NCBI RefSeq assembly: GCF_902713615.1 | Contig: NC_052146.1 | Coordinates: 303,506,335-303,570,334 of the forward strand | Reading direction: 5' to 3' | DNA: 64,000 bases | Origin: Scyliorhinus canicula | Lineage: Eukaryota | Shown: positions 35,063 through 61,327 of the stretch, one piece after another | How the letters are laid out: every line of letters begins with the position of its first letter | Numbering within the stretch: position 1 is the stretch's first letter | Notes under the pieces: model-generated | Told to the model about the DNA's origin: nothing | Database searches by the model: none | Seen by the model: the letters and a program-made list of their open reading frames with translations, nothing else | Made by a program: the position numbers and the translations under genes

Positions 35063-36692
35063 TCAATGCTCGCTGTGAGCAGAAAGCCAACACGCCCCGA
35101 CAGCCCCGGACACACCCATATCCACTATCACAGCCTCAGAAATCAGATCGGCCTTCTTTAAATTGAACCCTCGGAAGGCAATGGGTCCTGATGGAGTCCC
35201 TGGCTGTGCACTGAGATTCTGCACGGAACAACTGATGGATGTGTTCGCAGACATCTTCAACCTCTCCCTACTCCATTCCGAGGGTCCCACCGGCTTCAAG
35301 AAGACCACCATCATAGCGGTGCCGAAGAAGAACGAGGCAACGTGCCTCAACAACCACCATCCAGTGACCTTGACATTGATCATTATGAAGTGCTTCGAGA
35401 GGTCAGCCATGAGACCCATCATAGCCATACTCCCAGAATGCCTAGGTCCACTGCAATTTGCATACTGCCACAACCGGTCCACAGCAGACGCCATCTCCCT
35501 GGCCCTACACTCATCCCTGGAGCATCTCAACAACAAAGACTCCTATGTCAGATTCCTATTCATTGACTACAGCTCCACCTTCAACACCACAATCCCAGCC
35601 AAACTCATATCAAAGCTCCAAAACCTAGGACTTGGCTCCTTCCTCTGCAACTGGATCCTTGATTTTCTGACCCACAGGCCACAATCAGTAAGAATGAAGA
35701 ACAACACCTCCTCCTCAATACTGGGGCCCCACAGGGTTGCTTACTTAGTCCCCTACTAAACACTGTATACACACACGACTGCGTGGCACAATTTGGCTCC
35801 AAGTCCATCTACACGTTTGCTGATGACACAACCGTAGCGGGTTGGATCTCAAACAACGATGAGCCAGAGTATAGGAGGGAGGTAGAGAACCTAGTGGTGT
35901 GGTGTAACAACAATAATCTCTCCCTCAACGTCAACAAAACTAAGGAGCTGGTCATCAACTTCAGGAAGCGAAGTATCGTACACACCCCTGTCAGCATCAA
36001 TGGTGCTGAGGTGGAGATGGTTAACAGCTCCAAATTCATAAGTGTGCACGTCATCAATAATCTGTCCTGGTCCACCTAGAAAGCACAACAGTACCGATAT
36101 ATACTTCCTCAGGAAACTAAGGAAATTTGACATGCCTACATTGACTCTTACCAATTTTTACAGATGCACTATCGAAAGCATCCTATCGGGCTGCATCACT
36201 GCCTGGAATGGCAATTGCTCAGCCCAAGACCGTAAGAAACTACAGAGAGTCGTGAACACAGCCCAATCCATCACGTGAAGCTGCCTCCCATCCATTGACT
36301 CTATCTACACCTCCCATTGCCTTGCGAAAGCGGGCAGCATAATCAAAGACCCTTCCCACCCAAGTTATTCTCTCTTCCAACCTTGTTTATCGGGCAGGAG
36401 ATGCAAAAGTCTGAGAACACGCACTAAGAGATTCAAAAACAGCTTCTTCCCCACTGTTACCAGACTCCTGAATGATCCTCTTATGGACTGAACTGATCTC
36501 TCCAGACATCTTCTCTACTGAGTAGTACTACACTCTGTATGTTTCACCCAATGTTTATGTCTATGTATTTACATTGTGTATTTATCGTATGTCCTATGTT
36601 TTTTCATGTATGGACGATCTGTCTGGATTGTACACAGAATAATACTTTCCACCGTACCTCTGTACACATGACAATAAATCTAAATCTAAATC
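35063..36692 (+). mobile_element. 5'-truncated Rex1/Babar LINE (RT remnant)
   Basis: KAMGPDGVPG..L..C.EQL..VF.DIFNLSL, FIDYSSTFNT, FADDTTV; (TCTAAA)n tail. Confidence 0.88.
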
Positions 36693-54597: not shown

Positions 54598-54819
54598 AAC
54601 GCTACACTCCTCTCCCTTTACCTTTTTTATACAATCTTCAAATTCAATTTACTAAAATCCATATTCTAAATAATATATAAGTTAGACATTTGAAAATCAA
54701 AGTAGCGATTGTTCAGTGTTCAGTTCTTGAGATTTGCAGTTCAACATAACACTTCTCCTAGTATGTTTCAACTATATACAGTTCCAAATACAGTCTTGCA
54801 TGAGATTCTACCACACAGG

Positions 54820-55240
54820 TTTGCTGCTTTTTGAGTCCAGTTCTAGACTCTGCGCTGATCAGGTGTGATATACTTTACTCTGCGGACGGTGTCACTCTCA
54901 AATCCTTTATTAATCCTTTTTTCTGTCACGCACCTTACTCTACAATGCATGGCGGTACCATCATCACAATACAATGCAATCTGTGCCTTGACAGCTCATT
55001 CACAAACTCAATCTGTCACATGCGAAAGAGTGGTCATGGTACCCTGTTTCTGGTACTTAGGCCATGGGATAAAGTTCCTTTTCTTTCTCGCATTTCTATT
55101 CAGCATCTTTTCCATCGACCATGTCATATTAGTTCTTGTGCTTTTCTATTGGTGTGACCGTTTCAGTAATCTTGGCCTGGCACTTAATCTCAGTTTCCTT
55201 CTGTCTGAATTGTTCCTCTGTCTACATCTCTCCTGCACAA
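54820..55240 (-). pseudogene. SYCP1-like processed fragment
   Basis: ETEIKCQAKITETVTPIEKHKN*YDMVDGKDAE resembles human SYCP1 EIDKRCQHKIAEMVALMEKHKHQYDKIIEERDSE; stops and frameshifts. Confidence 0.6.
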
Positions 55241-55244
55241 AGTC

Positions 55245-55600
55245 CTTCATTTCACAACCTCTTTCTTTCAGCTTTTGCATCAAACAATCTTCTGCTTGTT
55301 TTGCATCGACTTTCTTCACCACCTGTATTTTGCACTACACCCTCCATCAGCTGCAGTTTGAGCTAAGCCAGTTCCAGCTCCATCCCCTTTATCTTGATAT
55401 TCATCTGAAGTACTCTTCGATGAACTGACCAATTTAAATGGCCCATCTTTGTTAAGAGTTCTCTGCAGCGATTGCAGTGTTCAACCGTTTCCAAATTATT
55501 TTCCAACTCTGCTTTATTTCCCAACTGTGGCCTTCCCAATCTCTCACTCAGTTGAGGGCTGATTTATTTGTATCTGATGATTCTTGGTTTCTGATTCTCA
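55245..55600 (-). pseudogene. RABGAP1/RABGAP1L-like C-terminal coiled-coil processed fragment
   Basis: YK*ISPQLSERLGRPQLGNKAELE...VEHCNRCRELL...GMELELA*LKLQLME..CKIQ versus RABGAP1 YKQICSQLSERLEKQQTANKVEIE...VDDCERCREFF...EMELELAQTKLQLVEAECKIQ. Confidence 0.7.
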
Positions 55601-55903
55601 TTCTCAGAACGTACAAGCTTTACTCTGAGTCCATTTGCCTCGGTGTAAACGTTGCTCCATCAGCATTCTGACCTTGATTTCCAGCTTTGAGAGAAATTCC
55701 TGATCCACTGACATTTCCACCAGCTTAACGCTCCGTTCCTGGACACATTGTAATTCTTCCATTAACCACTGCAGTTTTTTGTTTCTATTAAAATAACTTT
55801 CTCTTGGCAAAGAGAATCACAATCATTCTTTTGTCCATCGCTTTGCTTGTGCAATCTATTCAGTTATCCATTTCTGAGTTTCTTCCTGGCTGAATCGATT
55901 ATT

Positions 55904-56120
55904 TAAAAAAAAATTTAGTGTACCCAATTCATATTTTCCAATTAAGGGGCAATTTATCGAGGCCAATCCACCTACCCTGCACATCTTTGGCTATTTGGGG
56001 CGAAACCCATGCAAACACTGGGAGAATGTGCAAACTCCACATGGACAGTGATCCAGAATCGAACCTGGGACCTTGGCGCCATGAGGCAGCAATGCTAACC
56101 ACTGCGCCACCGTGCTGCCC
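55904..56120 (-). mobile_element. V-SINE inserted into the pseudogene mosaic
   Basis: 13-bp TSD TGAATC(G/A)ATTATT. Confidence 0.88.
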
Positions 56121-56163
56121 AAGATGAATCAATTATTCCCTTCTGACAATATTTGTTAACAAT

Positions 56164-56770
56164 CTCTCCCTTCTCAAGCTCTGCATGTTTTCAGAGAACT
56201 GACGGATTCCTTTTGTAGTTACAACAGACTCCAATTCTACATTCATGATTTATTTCTGCTTGTGATATTTATTGGACAGTTTGCTGAATTGCTAACTTGT
56301 TCCAACAGCTGTGATCTCTCTTTTGGTTTGCCTGTTGCTAAGTCCTCCTCAGCACCCTCAACACCGCACAATTTCTGCCTCTCTGCAGAATGCCAAGGCC
56401 TCTGGTCCATTTGTGTTCTCCACACGACTAGTAGCTCGATCATTCAGTTGGACCACAATAGAATTCCCAATAATGGCTCTGATAAATGATTTCTCGGCTC
56501 TGATTTCTTCTTCAACAATACGGTGACTCTTGCAGTAGATGTTCCAGGGTGTCCTATGTCGGCACCATGGATTAAATCTTTGATGTCTTTCACTCTGAGA
56601 CTAGCAGTTCTCTCACCCATTACAAAACTGATAGCATCCATTACATGGGGATTTCCTTGGCTCTTCGAATTCCAGGCTATGACCATTGGTGTTGAGTTTT
56701 GCTGTGCTTTTTCTCTCAACTCTTTTAGACTTTTATTAACATCTTCATGCTCTAACTCCAGTTCCTTCAC
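56164..56770 (-). pseudogene. SMC1B: SMC1B-like processed pseudogene fragment (exon-6-like tail followed by exons 2-4)
   Basis: VMDAISFVMGERTASLRVKDIKDLIHGADIGHP...KSFIRAIIG...GRNC...KPKERSQLLEQVS...KHAELEKGE; intronless across exon 2/3/4 junctions; frameshifts and stops; VMDA, FVMGE, GAxIG and NC residues fit SMC1B better than SMC1A. Confidence 0.8.
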
Positions 56771-56775
56771 CGCTT

Positions 56776-57147
56776 ACTGGTGAAGTCGAGGATCCAGTTG
56801 CAGAGGGAGGAGCCATGTCCTAGGTTTTGGAGTTTGGATATGAGCTTGTTGGGGATTATGGCGTAGAAAGCGTAGCTGTAGTCAATGAATAGGAGTCTGA
56901 CGCAGGTGTCCCTGTTGTTGAGATGCTCCAGGGATGAGTGGAGGGCCAGGCAGATGGTGATTGCTGTGGACCGGGGTTGTGGTGTTATGCGACTTGCAGT
57001 GGATCTAGGTATTCCGGGAGTATGGAGTTGATGTGCCTCATGACCAACCTCTCGAAGCACCTCATAATGCTCAATGTCAAGGCCACCGGATGGTCGTCAT
57101 TGAGGCACGTTGCCTGGTTCTTCTTTGGCACCGCTATGATGGTGGTC
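56776..57147 (-). mobile_element. Rex1/Babar LINE RT fragment
   Basis: [27 protein letters not shown]; LFIDYS; same family as 35063-36692. Confidence 0.85.
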
Positions 57148-57759
57148 TCTTCCTCTGAGCTCCAGCGTTGCCTGCGCTTTGAGGTCTTCAGTTGCTTACA
57201 AACCTCCGAGCTCGAGTTACCCTCCATCTGGCGGCTTCTCTGACATTCAGATTCTGGCAGTTTTAGACCTTTTCTCGAATACCAAAAGCCCACGAGTCAT
57301 GCCTTGAAATTCCACGTTTGGATAATTCCTCCTGATCAGCTGCTCTTTTCAATGTGAAGAGTGTGAATTTCCCCCTGTCCCCCTGTCCCCCTGCCCCCTC
57401 CACCCCACCTGGAAAAAATAGACGGTGCGAGGTTCATGGGTAAGACTCCCGGAATCGAGGCTCTGGTGCCATTTTTGTGAAGGAGGGGAGACTTTCCGAT
57501 GTAGCGAAAATTCGGGCCAGTGTGTAATGACCGGGTTAGCTCGTTCTCCTTTCTTTCCATCGTGACACACGTTTCCCTGCAGTAATAATTCTGATCCACT
57601 GGCATGCTGCTTTTTCCATGAACACTGACACAAAGTTGTTTGCAACCTCCAAGCCAAGTCATACATATAAGAGCAGAGGGAACGGGAAGAGACCATTTTC
57701 TCTCTGCTCTGCTCCGTCATTCAGTCAGATCATGGCTGTGATCTAATTTCATAAGAATT

Positions 57760-59432: not shown

Positions 59433-61327
59433 GGGCGGGATTCTCCGACCCCACGCAGGGTCGGAGAATCGGCCGGTAGCGGCGTTATTCCCGCTCCCGC
59501 AGGGTTTTTAAATCTCTGACCGGCCAAAAACCGGCGCTGTGCAAATCCCGCCGGCAGCCTCTGAAAACAGCTGGCGCCGGCGGGATTTCATTTTTTTTTT
59601 AGATTCCACAAATCTCCGGCCCGGATGGGCCGAAGTCCCGCCGACGTGGCCACGGGTCACGTCGGCGAAAATCACAGTTGCTTTAAAATGGCGTCAACCA
59701 TTGATGATGGTTGACGCCGTTCAGTGTCGGGGGGTGGGTTGCGGCATCGGGGGGGGGGGTGGGTTGCGGGTATCGGGGGGGGGTGGGTTGCGGCATCGGG
59801 GGGGGGTGGGTTGCGGGTATCGGTGGGGGGTGGGTTGCGGCATCGGGGGGGGTGGGTTGCGGCATCGGGGGGGGTGGGTTGTGGCATCGGGGGGGTGGGT
59901 TGCGGCATCGGGGGGGTGGGTTGCGGCATCGGGGGGGTGGGTTGCGGCATCGGAGGGTGGGTTGCGGCATCGGGGGGTGGGTTGCGGCATCCGGGGGTTG
60001 CGGCATCGGGGGGGGGCATCGGGGGGGGGGGGTTGCGGCATCGGGGGGGTGGGTTGCGGCATCGGGGGGGTTGCGGCATCGGGGGGGGTTGCGGCATCGG
60101 GGGGTGGGTTGCGGCATGGGGGGGGGTTTGGGGGCAGCGGCGTGCAGAGAGGGGGGCGACGGATGCCCTGGGCCAACGCACCGTCGCCCCCCCCCTCTGT
60201 ACGCCGCTGCCCCCTACCCCAACCCCCCCCTCACCACCCCTACCTCCCTCCAACGCCCCTACCCACCACCCCTACCCCCCTCCCCACCACCCCTACCCCC
60301 TTCACCACCCCTACCCCTCTCCAACGCCGCACCCCCCCACCCCCCACTAACGCCGCACCCCCCCCCCCACTAACGGAGGAAGGAAGGGGGGGAGGAGGAA
60401 GGAGGGGGGACGGAGGAAGGAAGGGGGGGGAGGAGGAAGAAGGGGGGAGGAGGAGAGAGGGGGGGTGTGGGTACCGGCCTTCAGAGGGAGGGGGACGGGG
60501 TGTGGGTACCGGCGTTGAGGGGGGGACCCGGCGTTGAGAGGGGGGGTTGCGGCGATGAGGGGGGGTTGTGGCGTTGAGGGTGGGGGGTTGCGGCGTTGCG
60601 AGAGATGGGGGGCGGCGTTGGAGGGGGGTAGGGGTGGTGGGGAGGGGGGGTAGGGGTGGTGGGGAGGGGGGTAGGGGCGTTGGAGGGAGGTAGGGGTGGT
60701 GAGGGGGGGTGGTTGGGGTAGGGGGCAGCGGCGTACAGAGGGGGGGGGGCGATGGTGCGTTGGCCCAGGGCATCCGTTGCCCCCCCTCTCTGCACGCCGC
60801 TGCCCCCAAACCCCCCCCATGCCGCAACCCACCCCCCAATGCCGCAACCCCCCCCCCCGATGCCCCCCCCCCGATGCTGCACCCCCCCGATGCCGCAACC
60901 CCCCCCCCCGATGCCCCCCCCGATGCCGCAACCCCCCGGATGCCGCAACTCCCCCCCCCGATGCCACAACCCCCCCCCGATGCCGCAACCCCCCCCCCCC
61001 CCGATGCCGCAACCCCCCCCCCCCCCGATGCCGCAACCCCCCCCCCCCCCCGATGCCGCAACCCCCCCCCCCCCCCAAATGCCGGGTCGGTCTCTCTCCT
61101 CCCCCCCCCAAACGCCGGGTCAGTCTCTCTCCTCCTCGTCCTCCAAAAAACGCCGGGCCTCACCACTTCCGCAGCTGGTGAAACTGACGCGTATCGCGTC
61201 AGTCAGCTGCTGGCCCCTCCGGGAACGGAGAATAGCGGCCTAAAAGAAGGCCCCGACGCCGGAGTCATGTACACCGATTTTTCTCGCCGGAAATCGGCGT
61301 TACGACGGTCTGCAGAGAATTTCGCCC
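59433..61327. mobile_element. 1.9-kb Harbinger-like element carrying a large internal palindrome of G-rich tandem repeats
   Basis: TIRs GGGCGGGATTCTCC / AGAGAATTTCGCCC; perfect TSD CTA; inverted arms ~59725-60330 and ~60608-61078. Confidence 0.85.

Follow-up and report, generated by a model that had tools for sequence, protein, structure and literature searches.

What kind of RNA could have left, on the minus strand of a 64,000-nt stretch of shark DNA (the whole stretch analyzed here, henceforth the window), a copy of the meiotic cohesin gene SMC1B in which the end of exon 6 appears to run directly into the start of exon 2? The sequence-only reading of this locus had described an intronless SMC1B retrocopy and proposed a circle of exons 2-6, or an exon-scrambled transcript, as its template. 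The part of the locus that follows the junction comprises three exons.

56467..56656, minus strand: SMC1B exon 2, 190 nt, starting with GGAAATCC, with a 1-nt insertion after GKS
56357..56466, minus strand: SMC1B exon 3, 110 nt, fused to exon 2 without an intron, from the alignment to exon 3 of the contig L001 (see below) and the protein alignment
56164..56356, minus strand: SMC1B exon 4, 193 nt, ending ..KHAELEKGE (vs ..KHAKLEKEE at the exon end), from the protein alignment and the gar gene structure

The minus-strand ORF at 56770-56444 matches the SMC1A head structures in the PDB (chain residues 35-87, E = 2e-11), as well as the Pfam family SMC_N. By tblastn and frameshift-aware protein-to-DNA alignment, the match to SMC1B begins with the G of GKS (residue 37) and extends to approximately residue 205, which corresponds to positions 56656 to 56164 of the minus strand; two stops and no fewer than six frameshifts interrupt it. 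When 1.8 billion representative proteins were searched, the matches of the copy included SMC1B proteins and many short genomic ORFs in which exon 2 is read through from the preceding intron. The best database relative is P0268, an 86-residue ORF (..GHPVSPTARVT..) that is unlike the invariant SMC1A sequence; the copy is nearer to SMC1B than to SMC1A. P0268 was located on two Logan contigs, L001 (SRR17051963) and L002 (SRR089296), which are identical to each other and represent genomic contigs of a relative with SMC1B exons 2 and 3, arranged as the 3' end of intron 1, exon 2, a short intron 2 (~370 nt) and exon 3. These contigs, covering exons 2-3 alone, are the only chondrichthyan-like SMC1B sequence returned by the protein databases: a search seeded with frog SMC1B yielded only tetrapods and coelacanth among the best 120 matches listed, and a search with an exon-6 profile yielded bird, mammal and teleost ORFs, none of them clearly chondrichthyan.

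The contigs of the relative also provide the exon borders for comparison. In L001, exon 2 follows ...caacag, starts with GGAAATCA (also written GGAAATCAAATATAATGGATGCC) and ends with ATTATTGG before gtaaag, whereas exon 3 lies between ...gtcag, followed by GGAATTCT, and GTTTCAG, followed by gtatta. Over 199 nt, the window and exon 2 of L001/L002 share 77% identity, and the exon joints of the window are contiguous, namely ATTATTGG-GAATTCT between exons 2 and 3 and GGTGTTGAG-GGTGCT between exons 3 and 4, so that introns 2 and 3 are absent. Since both introns are missing in the window and present in L001, the segment 56656-56164 of the minus strand is interpreted as an intronless, frameshifted, processed copy of SMC1B exons 2-4. 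The proposed retrocopy is thereby borne out, as is its estimated length of ~493 nt without introns, which equals the sum of the three exons in the window (190 + 110 + 193 = 493 nt).

Immediately before exon 2 lie 114 nt and a short joint whose assignment decides whether the exon order is unusual at all.

56657..56770, minus strand: last ~38 codons of SMC1B exon 6 (NGHSLEFE .. SQ), with two compensating frameshifts, ending AGC CAA
56771..56782, minus strand: ambiguous 12-nt joint ACCAGTAAGCG, belonging either to the end of the LINE or to exon 6 (codons Q * A just before VKELELE)

The middle of the exon 6 piece is readable only with its two frameshifts: the 114 nt are translated in a first frame, then as NTNGHSLEFE in another frame, and then again in the first frame for the final SQ. 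For 10 of the 13 vertebrate SMC1B proteins compared, the best local alignment of the 114 nt to the whole 1230-residue protein falls on residues 333-371 or 333-356, a protein-level similarity to distant vertebrates within a low-complexity coiled-coil region; in the coelacanth, for example, the alignment IQELELELLDVEKAMSEFEKKVEVEILSGERAVELEESQ ends on the final residue of exon 6. Residues 328-332 of some proteins further align to 56771..56782 (KLGQ- vs RLHQ*). In the frameshift-aware alignment against the whole coelacanth and axolotl proteins, residues 333-369 are matched with a score of 61, which none of 70 codon shuffles reached (shuffle maximum 50; z = 5.1-5.2). The sequence-only reading had regarded this peptide as the end of exon 6 and not as exon 1, and the alignments agree with it: the best match is to residues 333-371 with z about 5, the frameshift-aware scores are 30-61 for exon 6 and 15-24 for exon 1, and 378 nt of L001 intron 1 are without similarity to the 114 nt, so that retention of intron 1 was rejected.

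It seems improbable that the 114 nt are something other than exon 6, such as exon 1, an alternative first exon, or another coiled-coil mRNA acquired by template switching, and that the likeness reflects composition. This explanation draws on the abundance of E, K and L in the peptide, with shuffles reaching 50 against the observed 61, and on the exon-6 profile, by which the 114-nt peptide ranks first among the 2861 six-frame peptides of the window, yet with an E-value of only 0.94 and with other weak matches downstream, at about 55560. Exon 1 itself is of similar length (109 nt of coding sequence in gar), and VKELELEH resembles the N-terminal LKQLEVEN, a weak likeness of the form LK.LE.EN. Nevertheless, no frame contains the exon 1 motifs ENFKS, IGPF and GPNGSG (Walker A), even though exon 2 next to it is well kept, at ~55% identity. 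Moreover, the match to exon 6 is co-linear across the whole 114-nt piece and ends on the last two residues of the exon, SQ, at the junction, in those 10 of 13 species, and a template jump landing by chance on the exact exon 2 acceptor is improbable.

Exon boundaries were taken from the mapped SMC1B gene of gar (L003), where the G37 codon is split after its first base by the end of coding exon 1 (109 nt; phase 1), exons 2, 3 and 4 measure 207, 113 and 204 nt, exon 4 ends ..EQVE before AQKYQ, and exon 6, of 259 nt, closes with ..DVHLEEAQ in phase 0; intron 1, with 4.5 kb, is the longest among the first six. These boundaries, as well as the conserved end of exon 6, agree with those given in the sequence-only reading. 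In birds, mammals (SMC1A and SMC1B) and teleosts alike, the genomic ORFs for exon 6 close with ..Q followed by V(gt), the V being the GT of the donor, and it is by this conservation in gar, birds, mammals and teleosts, not from shark sequence, that the exon 6 donor was placed. In the window, exon 2 similarity begins at 56656, the first base of the exon (GGAAATCC vs GGAAATCA of L001), and the minus-strand junction at 56657/56656 reads ..AGC CAA directly followed by GG AAA TCC, with zero extra bases. Thus, the break is where it had been predicted, at ~56657/56656, and falls on exon boundaries on both sides: exact to the base at the acceptor, as judged by exon 2 of the relative, and exact to the codon ..SQ at the donor, as judged by the conserved exon 6 end. 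We consider the exon 6-exon 2 junction very probably real. Because the donor end of a downstream exon abuts the acceptor of an upstream exon exactly and without filler, the junction is interpreted as a product of splicing; by our estimate, which assumes ~24 boundaries in a 3.7 kb mRNA, two random breakpoints would fall on exon boundaries in donor-acceptor polarity in roughly 1 in 1000 cases.

The extent of the SMC1B material bears equally on the nature of the template. Downstream of exon 4 the minus strand carries three further features.

56125..56163, minus strand: possible first exon 5 codons (IVNKYCQKGIIDS vs AE[RK]YQ.L..E), a weak match, 1.5-3.5 SD above shuffles
55891..56137, minus strand: later SINE, at about 56120/56124-55904, with the target-site duplications AATAATTGATTCA (56137-56125) and AATAATCGATTCA (55903-55891)
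54625..55890, minus strand: continuation of a purine-rich, single-copy, cDNA-like block, by composition and sequence, ending AGTAAA...ATAAAAAAGG

The copy had been thought to stop at KHAELEKGE. This matches the end of exon 4, but it is probably not the exact stop: perhaps a dozen of the codons that follow (IVNKYCQ) weakly resemble the exon 5 start AE[RK]YQ, and with exon 5 only weakly visible it is uncertain where the SMC1B part ends on its 3' side. On that 3' side, wherever its limit may lie, an A-run is absent at 56164-56125. Residues 205-1228 gave nothing significant downstream, where forward proteins score no better than reversed ones and where the age of the copy limits sensitivity; likewise, the SMC1B hinge and C-terminal head were not found downstream, and neither a second exon 6 end nor a second exon 2 was found in the window. 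A linear continuation into exons 5-8 past the SINE was considered on account of the tempting matches NQKPRIIRYK, KYRW..FD and NKAELENNLETVEH and was rejected: reversed proteins score at least as well, the anchors demand mutually inconsistent indels, and there is no second exon 6 end at the DNA level. A rolling-circle product was rejected as well, there being no second exon 2 in the whole window. With no exon 1, no exons 6-25 downstream and no repeated exon 6 end, the SMC1B material appears to be confined to the exons of an exon 2-6 circle (about 1 kb).

The SINE was inserted after the copy, just past the SMC1B part, where it is flanked by a 13-nt target-site duplication (AATAATYGATTCA). Elements of this type are ~215 nt long, start with GGGCAGCACGGTGG and occur in at least 15 copies in the window; neither ARAGORN nor Rfam gave a tRNA or Rfam match for them. 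The SMC1B piece as a whole sits in a purine-rich, cDNA-like block of roughly 2 kb. The minus-strand portion at 54625-55890 is coiled-coil-like, has a short A6 at about 54625, and shows no significant match to SMC1B, Pfam, PDB or Atlas. No 9-mer or longer is shared between 57800-57150 and 54660-54500 that could represent a target-site duplication of the whole block, which may have been lost at so old a locus.

Taken together, a back-spliced circle of SMC1B exons 2-6 is the likeliest template, and we regard it as rather probable. Of the earlier proposal of such a circle or an exon-scrambled transcript, the junction stood up to comparison with the exon boundaries, while circularity itself is deduced from the exon content. 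The circle is favored over a linear exon-repetition mRNA, because a linear mRNA should carry 3' exons and none were detected. Circles that begin with exon 2 after a long intron 1 are common among circRNAs, and exon 2 as the back-splice acceptor fits this usual pattern because intron 1 is long (4.5 kb in gar). To our knowledge, circRNA has so far been shown in no shark. A testis-enriched circSMC1B is reported for cattle (PMC12023415).

Among the other templates, the strongest competitor is a linear exon-repetition RNA made by intragenic trans-splicing, in which the exon 6 donor of one SMC1B pre-mRNA is joined to the exon 2 acceptor of another; it would yield an identical, exact donor-acceptor junction. 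What counts against it is that circRNAs are far more common and more stable than such trans-spliced RNAs. In addition, had a poly(A) RNA been copied starting at its 3' end, exons 5-25 would be expected, none of which are detectable downstream, and the exon 6 end does not recur in the window. Intragenic trans-spliced RNAs do exist and are often mistaken for circRNAs (PMC10450196, PMC6283421); all in all, we rate this origin as unlikely. Less likely still is an ordinary linear mRNA from a gene with a genomic tandem duplication of exons 2-6, either the parent gene or a lost paralogue. The same junction would be expected from it, and the data considered here are those of the 64,000-nt window; the exon order is, however, standard in gar, L001 has a normal succession of intron 1, exon 2, intron 2 and exon 3, and the later exons are again absent downstream. 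Finally, rearrangement of an ordinary linear retrocopy by DNA deletion or duplication after insertion is very improbable even at an old locus disrupted by a SINE and many indels, given that both breakpoints lie on exon boundaries, donor to acceptor and without filler (the roughly 1-in-1000 coincidence estimated above), and that other SMC1B exons were not found nearby.

Returning to the back-spliced circle as the preferred template, the sequence on the 5' side of the copy suggests how it might have been captured.

56783..57300, minus strand: 3'-truncated LINE ORF2 reverse transcriptase fragment, ending ...CNWILDF, in the same orientation as the SMC1B piece

This fragment is 85% identical over 366 nt to a plus-strand copy at 35302-35665; tblastn with the reverse transcriptase of the latter covers 57161-56770, and the Pfam RVT_1 match of the fragment is weak. 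The LINE homology stops in the middle of the reverse transcriptase at GACTTC(ACC), ..NWILDF (56783), and the mid or C-terminal remainder of the enzyme was found nowhere on the minus strand of the window. This LINE fragment shares the minus strand with the SMC1B piece and is fused to it directly, no more than 12 ambiguous nt lying between the two. The plus-strand copy that served as the reference for the truncated one (57300-56783) is frameshifted but more complete; it belongs to the same LINE family, spans 35163-36278 and contains RVT_1, a FADD box and a C-terminal motif of the PF09004/ALKBH8_N type. The earlier interpretation, sound on the junction and the retrocopy, had overlooked the fusion to a LINE reverse transcriptase, which bears on the mechanism.

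The LINE fusion and the cDNA-like block suggest template jumping by a LINE enzyme, and a 3'-truncated LINE fused to foreign cDNA would fit such jumping if the last jump of the enzyme was onto LINE RNA; the LINE and SMC1B pieces could also have become adjacent by chance or through a deletion. In the mechanism that we propose, reverse transcriptase would start on the circle near the beginning of exon 5, copy backwards through exons 4, 3 and 2, pass over the back-splice junction, copy the final ~115-125 nt of exon 6 and leave the template there. The enzyme would most likely be a LINE reverse transcriptase that switches RNA templates within one germline insertion event; the copy would then decay, and the SINE would be inserted into it afterwards. 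The parts of this scheme differ in strength: we infer a circular template, template jumping, a single insertion event and germline expression, and capture by LINE template jumping in one event is less likely than not. The explanation that best accounts for the locus, and that we hold to be moderately probable, is that part of the meiotic cohesin gene SMC1B was copied from a circular exon 2-6 RNA into what is now a dead processed pseudogene.

Several known systems share features with this locus. The circRNA-derived pseudogenes of mouse and human (Dong et al. 2016, Cell Res 26:747; PMC4897178), exemplified by 33 copies of circRFWD2 with an exon 6-exon 2 junction, are processed copies in which exons are joined non-colinearly at splice sites and which contain only the exons of the circle; they end without poly(A) and have flanking retroelement sequence. 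Processing, the type of junction, the exon content and the retroelement flank are shared here; on the 3' side, the limit of which is uncertain, no A-run occurs at 56164-56125, and the whole block ends with a short A6. As operationally defined in that study, a high-confidence circRNA-derived pseudogene is processed, has a reversed junction at splice sites and contains nothing from outside the circle, and the locus, judged from its sequence, conforms to this description: neither exon 1 nor exon 7 or any later exon was detected, within the sensitivity that the age of the copy allows. In contrast to the mammalian cases, the host is a cartilaginous fish, there is a single and very decayed copy whose parent circRNA is deduced from it, and the flank is a LINE ORF2 fragment in the same orientation rather than LTRs, all of it inside a longer cDNA-like block. 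The authors of that study noted the lack of poly(A) in their pseudogenes, called the mechanism 'mysterious', and pointed out that other routes to non-colinear junctions exist (PMC4897178).

In another case, LINE template-jump chimeras such as U6/L1, mRNA/L1 and the tripartite MGL chimera of Magnaporthe (PMC2104539; bioRxiv 10.1101/2025.02.02.635956) resemble the locus in that segments from different RNAs, one of them a LINE, directly abut each other and share one orientation. The canonical chimeras have the 3' end of a LINE or poly(A) RNA as their 3' partner and target-site duplications around the whole (PMC2104539; bioRxiv 10.1101/2025.02.02.635956), whereas in our locus the LINE piece lies on the 5' side and comes from inside ORF2, the search for a target-site duplication was negative, and the 3' end shows only AGTAAA...A6 in place of a LINE or poly(A) terminus. 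Ordinary SMC1B processed pseudogenes, like this copy, are intronless, frameshifted and non-functional; unlike them, the copy is devoid of exon 1 and of exons 6-25, and the end of exon 6 precedes exon 2.

CircRNA-derived pseudogenes are rare, and none outside mouse and human were found in the literature that could be searched. What is new here is a candidate in a new lineage that comes with a useful mechanistic hint. A case in cartilaginous fish would extend circRNA-derived pseudogenes across jawed vertebrates and would imply an SMC1B circle in the germline of an ancient lineage. The LINE fusion offers a concrete and testable mechanism, template jumping during target-primed reverse transcription, for a previously unexplained step, the reverse transcription and insertion of poly(A)-less circles. 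In its most far-reaching form, to which we give only limited credence, the locus would be the fossil of a single reverse-transcription event, in which a LINE enzyme moved across several germline RNAs, among them the SMC1B exon 2-6 circle with its back-splice junction, and ended on LINE RNA. If true, this would be direct genomic evidence that non-LTR reverse transcriptases bring circRNAs into genomes through template jumping, and germline back-splicing of SMC1B would be older than the split between cartilaginous and bony vertebrates. A single decayed locus does not amount to proof; its value is in prompting a genome-wide search for shark retrocopies that contain back-splice junctions.

Elsewhere in the window, a G-rich tandem array of a 21-nt unit (GGGGGGTGGGTTGCGGCATCG, about 19 copies) is located at 59729-60126; it is followed at 60200-60600 by C-rich and GA-rich short-period arrays. 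The minus-strand translation of these arrays consists of proline-rich repeats.
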